From Fimbriosthenelais zetlandica (taxonomy: Eukaryota): a stretch of DNA of 64,000 bases. The notes under the pieces were generated by a model. It was given only the letters and a program-made list of their open reading frames with translations. It searched no databases and was not told the origin of the DNA. The stretch lies in the NCBI GenBank assembly GCA_977030845.1, contig OZ365109.1:15004001-15068000 (forward strand), given 5' to 3'. Within the stretch, counting starts at the first letter, position 1; every line of letters begins with the position of its first letter. Below, one piece after another: positions 56,451-60,525 of the stretch. The translations under genes and the position numbers were made by a program.

Positions 56451-59400
56451 ATGGATTGTCTTCATGATGTGGCTGTCATAGGGGGAGGTGTGGTTGGATG
56501 TGCAATATTGCACCAAATGACTAAAGATGGGTACGACTGTGTGCTGGTAGAAAAAGAAGAGCATCTTATAACTGGAGCAAGTTCAGGAAATAGGTGGTTT
56601 TTTATGATCTTCTTTGTTAAAATAAAAGTTGTCATGAATTATAATGATGTGTTGTATAGTTATTAAATATTAAAGCTATTTAAGTAATAATGTCTAACGT
56701 AATTAATTTCTAAATAAAAAAAATTAGGCCTATATATAATCCATATATTTCTCCCACTAACATCATATTCAAGTAGGCCTACCGGGTATTGTACTTTTTC
56801 AGTGCAGTGTACGCATCTGGTTTTGATATCGAAAGAAACACTCTGGAAGGAAGATGTCTTGCACTATCTAGGAGTTTAAGAGAAAAAATATTCAAAGAAT
56901 ATAATTTGCCCGCTGGAAAACCGGGAGCCATCATCATCGCAATGAATGACGATGAGGTATTTTAAAATGTTTTTATTCTATTTTAAACTCTTCACTCATT
57001 TTCAATTAAATTTTCTAAACTATGAATAATAATATGAACGATATCTGTCTGTAAAAATGTTAACTTAAACCCATTTATAGTGTTGTAAAATCGATTTTCA
57101 TTCCAGATAAAAAGACTCCCCGAACTCCTGGATAAAGCACGTAAACATGGAGCCTCCGATTGTCGACTACTTACTAAAGTAGAAGTCCACCAGATGGAAC
57201 CAAATATCAGTGATGAGGTTCGGGCTGGCATGTGGGTGCCTGGAGAGAGAGCCTTTGAACCGTGGCTTCTACCAATAACCCAGGCACACGTCGCCAAAAA
57301 ATGGGGAGCGAAGGTAAAAATGCTGCATAAGATTAATGAGAATACATGTCTGATGTTATGCAACCTGTTGGAAACCAAATTATTTTTAGATTTAAAAATA
57401 GTATTTTTGCCAATTATAGTAGGGACTCTAATAAAAATTTTAAAATCGTTCTTTTATTTTTTAAATATGACCAAGGGCTGGATGTGGGGCGGAATTAGAC
57501 AAAACTTTTTAAATGGAGTGAATATCTTTATCCGTTCAGAAGTTATCGGGGATTGAACGGCCAAAAAATGGACAAGATTTCTCACTTTTTTACTATAGGC
57601 CAGCGGAGAAGAAATTGGCACGTCACTGTGTAATGAACGTCTGTTTTTTATTCTGTCACACAAACTTTACTTTCCAACCAATTTTTGTCAAATCTTCAAC
57701 ATATATTCAAATTATCTGGTGCTAAATGATTATGCAAGACTATTTGACCTTTGACCTTGGCGTCCCCTCGTAATATGTAGGTTAAAAGTCAGTTGTTCTA
57801 GAGAATCAATGCTAAAGGACTGCTGTTGAATCAGAAATCTAATAACGGCTTTTACTCTTTCATCTTAAAGCTCCATATTCTACATATCTTAAGCTACGTA
57901 TAGGTTTTTGTTTCATCGAGATCGACCCGGTAATTGCTTCAGAATTTAAACTTAAATTAACGCTGTTCTCGGACTAAAATTGTTTGGCCTTGTGGTGGTC
58001 TCACAGTGCAGCGGTCATTCACTTTCTGAGTAAGGCCAGAAAGTTGTATTGTTTGTTTCTGGTTCAACGACTGACCATCATAAAATCGCCCATAGAATCG
58101 TCGAGGTCATCGCCATTCTTTACGGGTTTTAGCCAAAAATAAAAAATCTAAAGTCCTGACTCTCCTCTGAAAAATTGAAATCTACGTTGGTCTTAAAAAT
58201 GTTATGTGACCTGAAACAGTACTTTTTTGTTTGGCCTAACTGTAGTAAGCTGGGCCGGTGGTCGAAAAATACATAAAGAATCTATTTGGATATTACACAG
58301 ACTGCGCCGGTCCTAATACAATCAAAACCGACATAGACATGGAGTAGAAATGTCGAAAAAGGTGTCTAAACCATCAAAACGAACGGCCCGCTTATATTTA
58401 CAGAGATTTCGGCGATTAATTCTCGGCTCGGAGCAGAAGCTCGGCTTGCCTATGGCAGTTTAGTGTATTAGCTTTACAGGTCGGGAAACGTCAATGTAGA
58501 ATCTTGCGTTCCATATTTAACGGACTGCGCCGGTCCTAATAGCAATAAAAGTTTCTGATTATGGGGTAAAAATGTCTGAAAAAGCCGCCTAGATCATCAA
58601 ATTGAGCGGCCCGAATAGAATTCTTGAAGATATTTGCGATTGTAAGTTACCCCGTTTTCTCTTGGACAATAGACATAGGAAGGACCTGTCGTATTATTAT
58701 GAAAAAACGACCATCATGTACGTCTATTCGTGTTCTTTCAAATGCGGTAAAATAGAAGTTGATCAGATATGTTGGGACTGAGCAATGCCTCAAAACGTGA
58801 ACACTACCAAATCAGTACTGTCAAGTCGCGAGCCAATTTTCACATGCCCAGCTGGGTGAGAATTTGAGCGGTGGATTGCACGCGTTACTAGAGTCCCTAA
58901 TTATAGGTAATGCATATGTGAAGTATTTTGTCTGAGGGACCCGTGGATGAATTTGGGAGTATTTTTAACCAGCATTAATTTCATGTCTAAAACTCTTATG
59001 TATGATTTAAATTGGGGAAATATAAGTTAGCCCGTGCCGTAGGAAAGTATGTCAGGAATATAGATAAAATATTCAAATAAAATAATGCAAATAATACAGA
59101 AGTAAGCCAGAAATATGAGATCTATCGAGGTTAAGAAGTACTATATATATGCTTTCAGATTCTGACAAGCCACAAAGTGATTGATGCCAAACGGCATTCA
59201 GATGGAATTTGGAAGATAGAAACAACTAAAGGTGTGATAAATGCTAAAACAGTAATCAATGCTGCCGGATTGTATGGGGATGAAGTGGAGTCATTTCATG
59301 GTCCCAGTCATTTTAGGTACTTAATATCCTTTCTGTAATACTTGCATCACATTTATCTTTTACCCAAAACCCCAAATAAGTTTCTAATTTACTAACGTAT

Positions 59401-60525
59401 CAGCATAAATTATAAAAGCAACTTTAGTAGCCTTCTTGTATAGGTTTACATACACATGAACTTGATGAATTTATGAGGACAAGACCTAACAAAATATCAT
59501 TTTCCTCTTGGTATAGGATAAAGCCTATTCGAGGTGAATATATCGTGTATGATAAGGCCGCTCAATGCCAAGTTAATCATATTTTGTTCCCAGTACCAAC
59601 GGAAATAACGCGGGGAGTCCTCATAGTTCCAACAGGTAATTTTCAAATGTTGAATTCAAATTTCCTTTCTAAATATCAGGCAGGGTGACCGTATCTTTTC
59701 CCACATATAAGTATTCCAGATATATTATATTTAAGCATGAATTATATCTATTTCCTCCATACATGTGTTTCAGTTTGCAAAAATTCGATACTGTGGTCGG
59801 TCTTGCAGTTGTGCAAATTCGAAAATAAATTTTTGTAAATAGTACCGAATAGACATATTTTGATTATAAACGAATGTTATATTTCTTTCATCAGTACATG
59901 GTAATGTGATCGTGGGACCCACAGCAGTGGGTGTCAACAAACGGACCGTTGACCAGGTATCAGAATCTACAGTTTCAAGTCTAAAATCCTACGCGGAGAG
60001 AGTAATACCTACTCTGGCCTCCCATCAAATCATTGGTACTTATGCTGGTTTGAGACCTGCAACAGAGTTCTCTGATTACCAAATAAAGCATCACCCAGAA
60101 AGGTGAGCAAGATAAAATAATGTTTTATACATATTTCTGTGGTTGAGAGATGACCAAATTAGAGTTCCATTACAAATGTAAATCTTATTTAATTTCACAA
60201 TCAAAAATCTTTCCAGAAAAAAACATACAAGATGATAATTTCGGAATTTCTGCTTCCTTGCAGTAACTGGGTAACAGTCGGTGGTATACGAGCCACAGGA
60301 GCTTCTGGAAGCCTGGCTATTGCGTCTTATGTCAACTTCTTAGTAAAACAGGGACTTAAGCAACAACCGTCTGGACCTGTCCGACCATCACCGCAATTTA
60401 GTCGTCCTATTAATTGGAGGGCGACTGAAAAGGGGACAGTTCACATGGACGATGAGGTTTACCAGATAACACACCCCATAACCTACTTTGGTTTAGTGGA
60501 TAAATCGGCCAACTCTAAACTTTAG
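56451..60525 (+). CDS. FAD-dependent oxidoreductase, DAO superfamily, LhgO/GlpA-like (COG0579-type), 416 aa, C-terminal PTS1 (SKL)
   Basis: Exons 56451-56593, 56803-56956, 57107-57313, 59159-59316, 59517-59635, 59895-60102, 60264-60525, phase-consistent. DVAVIGGGVVG Rossmann motif, EKE..GASSGNSAVYASGFD, VINAAGLYGDEV, RGEYIVYDK, GVLIVPTVHGNVIVGPTA, YAGLRPA, GGIRATGASGSLAIA; ends ANSKL*. Confidence 0.88.
57420..58899. mobile_element. hAT-like non-autonomous DNA transposon (~1.48 kb) in oxidoreductase intron 3
   Basis: TIRs TAGGGACTCTA / TAGAGTCCCTA; flanking direct repeat (A)ATTATAG at 57412-57419 and 58899-58906; internal ~223-bp diverged duplication (CTGCGCCGGTCCTAATA at 58302 and 58525); no transposase ORF. 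Confidence 0.75.

Follow-up and report, generated by a model that had tools for sequence, protein, structure and literature searches.

The window analysed here is a stretch of 64,000 nucleotides from contig OZ365109.1 of Fimbriosthenelais zetlandica, and the gene in question, on its plus strand at positions 56451-60525, appears to encode a flavoenzyme with a peroxisomal C-terminus. Its nearest relatives are bacterial glycerol-3-phosphate oxidases of the GlpO and GlpA-like types, and its substrate pocket departs from that of almost all homologs.

The locus and its protein

Joining seven exons gave an in-frame coding sequence of 1251 nt for a protein of 416 residues, which ends in ANSKL and is followed by a TAG stop codon. 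All six introns have GT...AG borders; the splice junctions and the 5' end were set by sequence and by comparison with orthologs. The N-terminus reads MDCLHDVAVIGGGVVG, and the GxGxxG motif begins 10 residues after the start. The locus is single copy in the 447-Mb, 79-contig assembly, and its neighbours are ordinary animal genes on a chromosome-scale contig. Taken together, the locus is probably a working nuclear gene whose product is a soluble DAO-superfamily oxidoreductase that depends on flavin adenine dinucleotide (FAD). An earlier note on this stretch had described a protein that opens directly at the Rossmann fold, and the same start was found in orthologs from many phyla. All the motifs it quoted were recovered (GASSGNSAVYASGFD, RGEYIVYDK, GVLIVPTVHGNVIVGPTA and GGIRATG), and exon joining confirmed the six introns and the canonical type 1 peroxisomal targeting signal (PTS1) that it had read in the ANSKL ending.

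Profile searches assigned the protein to the DAO family. Exon 1 matched Pfam PF01266 (DAO) at 39.6 bits, above the cut-off of 27.9, with colinear matches in exons 3 and 4; full-length orthologs also bear PF01266. The NCBIfam model NF033460, type-2 glycerol-3-phosphate oxidase, was matched colinearly across exons 1-6, the exon pieces summing to ~135 bits. Exon 6 by itself had 4X9M, the GlpO of Mycoplasma pneumoniae (MpGlpO), as its sole match in the PDB. A search of 1.8 billion representative proteins with exon 7 returned 40 proteins, mostly exon-sized fragments and six of them full-length (411-423 residues); the six were used to build an ortholog profile. The top match of that search, P0001 (5253 residues), had zero matched stretches and gave no BLASTP alignment, and was treated as an artefact. 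None of the searches returned the window protein itself, and the best match shows an identity of about 48%.

Against known structures the ortholog profile matched 4X9M with an E-value of 3e-70 (240 bits), the Drosophila L-2-hydroxyglutarate dehydrogenase (dmL2HGDH) with 129 bits and 3DME with 114 bits. Structure modelling was performed on the ortholog from the brachiopod Lingula, standing in for the window protein. The AlphaFold model had a predicted local distance difference test score (pLDDT) of 95 and a predicted template modelling score (pTM) of 0.93, and its nearest structure was again 4X9M, with template modelling (TM) scores of 0.84/0.90. ESM Atlas neighbours of the amphioxus ortholog included 'type 2 glycerol-3-phosphate oxidase' and a cluster rich in molluscs under the name 'glycerol-3-phosphate dehydrogenase'. 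Judged by these profile scores, the eukaryotic family resembles GlpO without being an equivalog of the enzyme from Mycoplasma, because NF033460 and 4X9M are its best family match and yet full-length orthologs score only 189-219 bits against the NF033460 equivalog cut-off of 460 bits. The protein is thus of bacterial COG0579, type-2 GlpO or GlpA-like type, in agreement with the bacterial, GlpA-like and COG0579 character proposed in the earlier note, and identity to bacterial DAO+BFD proteins reaches about 42%.

It is very improbable that the protein is an L-2-hydroxyglutarate oxidase or dehydrogenase of the LhgO or L2HGDH type. The RGEY of exon 5 does occur in L2HGDH (PFRGEY), and exons 1, 4 and 5 give weak LhgO matches, but the ortholog profile favours MpGlpO over dmL2HGDH by the bit scores above, and full-length orthologs reach 110-140 bits against the LhgO model NF008726, whose cut-off is 299. 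The His that is essential for L2HGDH is also absent, the main gene model has no presequence, and the genome has a separate canonical L2HGDH. One exon of the latter lies on another contig (G000:C11:18621291-18621446) and matches dmL2HGDH with 68 bits over 52 residues. The gene studied here did not nest within canonical L2HGDH.

Table 1. Features of the locus, with positions counted from the first letter of the window.
Feature	Position	Strand	Remarks
Long near-perfect inverted repeat	55345-55967
Open reading frame within the repeat	55436-55771	+
Open reading frame within the repeat	55490-55825	-
Presumed promoter/5' untranslated region	56100-56275
Palindrome and CTTCCGG site	about 56125-56160
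Upstream open reading frame	56173 (ATG) to 56242 (TAA)		ahead of the main start
Possible upstream coding mini-exon	56262..56273	+	ATG GAC AGT CTG, then GTAAGT donor; sequence only; ATG context weak (T at -3)
Coding exon 1	56451..56593	+	start codon and Rossmann FAD-binding fold; ends in phase 2 inside Ser48; Pfam DAO PF01266, E 6e-10
GxGxxG motif (G11-G13-G16)	56481-56498	+	in exon 1
Coding exon 2	56803..56956	+	Ala52 (GCA, 56813-56815) at the His51 site of MpGlpO; Tyr51 just before
Coding exon 3	57107..57313	+	207 nt, phase 0/0; length identical in Lingula and Ptychodera
Intron 3	57314-59158		1.8 kb
Two copies of a short element	58300-58560		in intron 3
Coding exon 4	59159..59316	+	second half of FAD-binding domain (INAAGLYGD)
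Coding exon 5	59517..59635	+	substrate-binding domain; PIRGEY against consensus PRKGQY; Arg253 (CGG, 59611-59613)
Coding exon 6	59895..60102	+	motifs VHGNVIVGPTA and AGLRPAT; Arg314 (AGA, 60053-60055) kept
Coding exon 7	60264..60525	+	GGIRATG, last helix of DAO fold, eukaryote-specific C-terminal module, PTS1 and stop
Eukaryote-specific C-terminal module	about 60361-60513	+	motif Y-x-I-T-H-P-I-T-x-F-G; within exon 7
PTS1	60514-60522	+	Ser-Lys-Leu
Stop codon	60523-60525	+	TAG

Several non-coding features accompany the gene. The presumed promoter and 5' untranslated region carries a GCGCATGCGC palindrome with a CTTCCGG site, and contains an upstream open reading frame. Just upstream of it, two open reading frames on opposite strands of the inverted repeat have identical translations. 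The short element present twice in intron 3 is GACTGCGCCGGTCCTAATA; its copies are about 220 nt apart, the sequence after each copy is similar, and the element is probably an interspersed or tandem repeat.

Relatives and age of the gene

Outside eukaryotes the nearest relatives are bacterial proteins, numbering thousands and about 452-481 residues long, which show about 40-45% identity over the whole DAO part (about 40-42% to the window protein) and carry a BFD [2Fe-2S] tail (PF04324). In Klebsiella, Anaerobiospirillum and one metagenomic genome (loci L002, L004 and L005), the gene downstream encodes a Pyr_redox_2 flavoprotein; an FGGY kinase, EutH or EutABC (ethanolamine ammonia-lyase genes) and a DeoR regulator are clustered nearby. 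This context fits a two-subunit dehydrogenase that acts on a kinase product such as glycerol-3-phosphate. The recurring cluster also hints at the breakdown of glycerophosphoethanolamine or a related compound.

The eukaryotic proteins instead end in a C-terminal module of their own, about 45 residues long and followed by the PTS1, and have neither the BFD tail nor a Pyr_redox_2 partner. The four-Cys BFD cluster was not found in the window protein, whose last 54 residues contain zero Cys, nor was PF04324 found in eukaryotic orthologs, bearing out what the earlier note had said of the C-terminus. Three strands and a helix, all with high pLDDT, make up this tail in the Lingula model. A decayed BFD remnant was suggested by a MAFFT alignment in which the eukaryotic tail lined up with the BFD domain; this candidate was rejected, hhalign giving a probability of 0.04 when 65 eukaryotic tails were compared with 94 bacterial ones.

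Orthologs of about 400-427 residues are present in many molluscs, in the annelids Capitella and Owenia, in Lingula, anthozoans, hemichordates, the brittle star Amphiura and Branchiostoma, as well as in the sponge Corticium and in saprolegnian oomycetes. They carry database names such as 'glycerol 3-phosphate dehydrogenase-like', 'MG039 homolog' and 'FAD dependent oxidoreductase domain-containing protein'. This distribution comes from a search with the ortholog profile and from searches with the Ptychodera and Aphanomyces proteins, in which scoring covered the 8000 candidates with the most words in common with the query. Among the matches listed for these three queries there was no protein from a vertebrate, tunicate, arthropod or nematode. 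The weakest listed matches are bacterial, with 317-465 bits, so that a normally conserved ortholog would be expected among them.

In an 89-row tree, the eukaryotic proteins split from the sampled BFD-bearing bacteria with a Shimodaira-Hasegawa-like approximate likelihood ratio (SH-aLRT) support of 100. The gene tree roughly follows animal phylogeny, with sponges first, followed by deuterostomes, cnidarians and lophotrochozoans. Within the last group the window protein is placed among the non-mollusc members; its exact position is unsure owing to a long branch. Exon maps reconstructed for Lingula, Capitella and Ptychodera show that the window gene shares each of its six introns with Lingula and Ptychodera, in both alignment column and phase, and five of the six with Capitella.

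By these introns the gene is an old resident and not contamination or a recent transfer, because their positions and phases are shared with a brachiopod and a hemichordate. Bacterial contamination or recent horizontal transfer, to which the identity of about 40-42% with bacterial proteins might point, is excluded: the six spliceosomal introns at shared positions, the animal genes around the locus on a chromosome-scale contig and a gene tree that follows animal phylogeny all stand against it, and the tree together with the shared introns refutes it. The long residence in the nucleus that the earlier note had read from the introns thus proved correct. Its suggestion of a pathway either anciently acquired or lost from vertebrates fits the lack of vertebrate proteins among the matches listed.

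Two further observations concern gene structure in other lineages. The orthologs of the sponge Corticium candelabrum (L010:1001-2251) and the coral Oculina patagonica (L013:501-1709) are single-exon genes, which would call for either intron gain on the bilaterian stem or two losses. A predicted isoform X2 of Ptychodera flava (P0156, 383 residues) lacks 31 residues, among them the VYGN..GPTAE strand of the substrate domain; either it arises by exon skipping, in which case it is probably inactive, or the annotation is at fault.

Targeting signals

The -SKL terminus of the window protein fits the PTS1 pattern [SAC][KRH][LM]. The signal is kept in orthologs of many phyla: among the 34 named non-cnidarian rows, 22 have a canonical PTS1, eight a relaxed variant and four neither. 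A canonical PTS1 was found in 19 of 30 exon-7-like fragments but only once among the 97 bacterial kin, and another four proteins from oomycetes have ARL or SRL as their terminus. The Lingula model shows disorder in its last three residues (pLDDT <50) after a well-folded tail, as would be expected for a usable PTS1. The genome also encodes Pex14 and catalase. The C-terminal sequence therefore points to a peroxisomal location, which we infer for the window protein.

A second possible N-terminus bears on this location. A spliced path that joins the upstream mini-exon to an acceptor before position 56391 would add 24 residues in frame (MDSL followed by LNSSLKRNQQICSFLQKVKQ), with four basic residues and one acidic residue. 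There is a slim chance that the protein resides wholly or partly outside peroxisomes: it may be cytosolic, or translation from ATG 56262 may yield an isoform with a presequence of mitochondrial type, giving mitochondrial or dual targeting. The consensus GTAAGT donor, the good acceptor and the basic character of the extension would allow such an isoform; protist relatives have N-terminal extensions and no PTS1, and the PTS1 is absent from cnidarian orthologs. The context of ATG 56262 is weak, however, and upstream ATGs and the upstream open reading frame accompany it, whereas ATG 56451 lies in a better context, with A at -3 and G at +4. Orthologs from molluscs, annelids, a brachiopod, hemichordates and an echinoderm begin directly at the Rossmann fold, most orthologs in the alignment of homologs have no counterpart of the 24-residue extension, and PTS1 conservation is far above the bacterial background.

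The family itself seems to be routed to different compartments in different eukaryotes. In all 14 rows of the anthozoan clade the tails have no PTS1-like ending and are acidic or odd (for example ...TDH and ...DDVK; P0091, P0054, P0085, P0067 and others), which suggests that the enzyme left the peroxisome there. A group of BFD-less relatives, probably from protists (P0216, P0217, P0220, P0222, P0225, P0235, P0239-P0241, P0279 and P0297), has N-terminal extensions of 35-80 residues, no PTS1, and an NSG(I/L)GCTGY motif with Cys at the site of the catalytic His.

Substrate pocket, proposed function and known systems

Residue equivalences were taken from a hidden Markov model alignment to 4X9M, in which His51, Lys258 and Arg320 of MpGlpO correspond to positions 52, 253 and 314 of the window protein. 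Lys258 and Arg320 are said, in the 2015 account of the MpGlpO structure, to be residues of the phosphate-binding pocket. His51, the equivalent of His92 in dmL2HGDH, is the proposed catalytic or Lewis base, and the H92A mutant of dmL2HGDH is inactive (PMC10726252). Among 121 full-length homologs, His51 is kept in 115, Lys258 in 119 and Arg320 in all. The window protein has Ala52 and Arg253 at the first two positions, Arg314 at the third, and keeps Ser48, the equivalent of Ser47 in MpGlpO. It is off consensus at 9 of the 65 columns conserved at >=95% (H52A, W95M, D150E, R225I, Q228E, K253R, E272V, S340A and G348A), the highest count of the 121 sequences, for which the median is 0.

The role of an ordinary oxidase of 2-hydroxy substrates is doubtful because the catalytic His is absent and Lys is changed to Arg in the substrate pocket. 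We accordingly regard it as unlikely that the protein is still an ordinary peroxisomal sn-glycerol-3-phosphate (G3P) oxidase, which forms dihydroxyacetone phosphate (DHAP) and hydrogen peroxide; another residue, such as Tyr51, or plain hydride transfer would then have to replace the His, and Arg253 take over phosphate binding from Lys258. Type-2 GlpO is the best family match, the equivalents of Arg320 and Ser47 are retained, Arg is a conservative substitute for the phosphate-binding Lys, and the His is also replaced in oomycetes and protists, Owenia and Physella, suggesting that the family tolerates its loss. Set against this are the near-invariance of the His among the homologs, the dead Ala mutant of the equivalent His in the structurally similar dmL2HGDH and the nine altered columns of the window copy.

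The pair of pocket changes is not confined to this gene. As His->Thr with Lys->Arg it was also seen in four sponge sequences and in Ptychodera flava, whereas two other hemichordates do not have it. The tree calls for three Lys->Arg events, and His loss accompanies every one of them; a sign test of this coupling has too few pairs to reach significance. The His was lost alone elsewhere, being replaced by Cys in oomycetes and the extension-bearing protist relatives, by Ser in Owenia and by Val in Physella. A single old paralog comprising all Arg253-type proteins was rejected by the approximately unbiased (AU) test (p 0.0004, difference in log likelihood 85.7). The paired change of His51 to a small residue and of Lys258 to Arg arose independently at least three times, in sponges, in Ptychodera and in the lineage of F. 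zetlandica. As a tentative and rather doubtful proposal, it could reflect a repeated shift of an ancient peroxisomal oxidase towards a second class of substrates or a second mechanism. By analogy with amine-oxidising members of the DAO fold, such a shift might, for example, lead from a 2-hydroxy phospho compound to a substrate that can be oxidised without a general base.

The same changes might instead reflect decay, that is, a catalytically crippled copy or one drifting under relaxed selection, a pseudo-enzyme or a gene heading for loss as in the lineages that have no member of the family. This is quite improbable. The window copy does combine the most conserved-site deviations with a long terminal branch and a missing catalytic His, but its seven exons, with canonical splice sites, join into an unbroken frame of 416 codons with a perfect SKL end, its FAD-binding motifs are retained, and the recurrence of the same pair in sponges and Ptychodera looks selected rather than decayed.

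We propose that the window protein belongs to a eukaryotic subfamily, spanning sponges to amphioxus and saprolegnian oomycetes, whose nearest relatives are by sequence the bacterial type-2 glycerol-3-phosphate oxidases and GlpA-like proteins. In the bacterial enzymes, electrons would pass through the BFD tail to the Pyr_redox_2 partner. The eukaryotic protein, folded and loaded with FAD, would be taken into peroxisomes by PEX5. Oxygen is the likely acceptor because the BFD tail and the electron-transfer partner are absent, and the flavin would be reoxidised by it as in the BFD-less MpGlpO; the hydrogen peroxide formed would then be cleared by catalase. Ancestrally the enzyme probably acted on sn-glycerol-3-phosphate or on another small compound of the 2-hydroxy phospho or carboxy kind, and oxidation of G3P would yield DHAP inside the organelle, for ether-lipid synthesis or a G3P/DHAP redox cycle. 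In the F. zetlandica copy the pocket has been remodelled by His51->Ala52, Lys258->Arg253 and changes at seven more sites conserved at >=95%, and from this we expect a changed substrate or mechanism in place of ordinary G3P oxidation. We give this explanation as a whole, a peroxisomal GlpO-like flavoenzyme with a remodelled pocket, a probability of about 0.6.

Several points weigh against it. The catalytic His is replaced by Ala and the branch of the window protein, at 1.05 against a median of 0.25, is the second longest in the tree, so that the copy could be weakly active or under relaxed constraint. The PTS1 is present in none of the 14 rows of the cnidarian clade and the hemichordate proteins end in HKL or PKL; peroxisomal location is therefore not universal in the family. 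The in-frame upstream mini-exon could give the protein a basic N-terminus of 24 residues. The case for oxygen as the electron acceptor is drawn, by analogy, solely from the missing BFD tail and partner. In descending order, the competing explanations are an ordinary G3P oxidase, a crippled copy, a non-peroxisomal or dual-targeted protein and an L-2-hydroxyglutarate oxidase, with contamination excluded.

Literature searches on peroxisomal glycerol-3-phosphate oxidase, 'MG039 homolog' and related terms found nothing on the eukaryotic family or its substrate. Neither a peroxisomal assignment nor the tail peculiar to eukaryotes nor the convergent change in the pocket seems to have been described before; the sequences are already public under automatic names, and the novelty lies in their interpretation. 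Knowledge of animal peroxisomal enzymes has been drawn almost wholly from mammals, yeast and plants. Here is a widespread, PTS1-tagged family with no described function, inherited largely along animal phylogeny from sponges to amphioxus, present also in oomycetes and not seen in vertebrates. Ether-lipid (plasmalogen) synthesis starts from DHAP, and lipids of this kind are abundant in marine invertebrates. If G3P is oxidised, DHAP would be made inside the organelle, at the start of this pathway; alternatively, the enzyme could close a G3P/DHAP cycle that reoxidises peroxisomal reduced nicotinamide adenine dinucleotide (NADH). If the pocket changes do mark a switch, the family would hold a new peroxisomal peroxide-forming reaction in invertebrates without a vertebrate counterpart. 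The repeated coupled swap of two pocket residues also offers a natural experiment for following the evolution of substrate choice among DAO-fold enzymes.

Among known systems, MpGlpO (4X9M), a type-2 L-alpha-glycerophosphate oxidase, is the best sequence and structural match. Both proteins have the two-domain DAO fold without a BFD tail, and share GxGxxG and the equivalents of Ser47 and Arg320. Identity is only about 25%, however; the eukaryotic proteins add the C-terminal module of about 45 residues and the PTS1, and His51 and Lys258 of MpGlpO are Ala and Arg in the window copy. The bacterial DAO+BFD (GlpA-like) proteins have the motifs NSxxxHTGFD, TKG and GLRPAT(x)3(D/E)Y in common with the eukaryotic family. 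They differ in their four-Cys BFD tail, which has no detectable homology to the Cys-free eukaryotic tail, and in lying within kinase/Eut/DeoR gene clusters together with a second flavoprotein. L2HGDH and LhgO belong to the same superfamily, with a similar fold (TM about 0.78 to the Lingula model) and a similar proposed mechanism in which a His base stands opposite flavin N5, but L2HGDH carries a mitochondrial presequence whereas the window protein has a PTS1. The peroxisomal flavin oxidases of animals that bear a PTS1 include D-amino-acid oxidase, D-aspartate oxidase, pipecolate/sarcosine oxidase, hydroxyacid oxidases and acyl-CoA oxidases. These are flavoproteins that form hydrogen peroxide and are set beside catalase by a C-terminal signal of the SKL type; D-amino-acid oxidase and pipecolate oxidase (PIPOX) share the DAO fold. 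In contrast to these enzymes, the family of the window protein represents another branch of the DAO superfamily.

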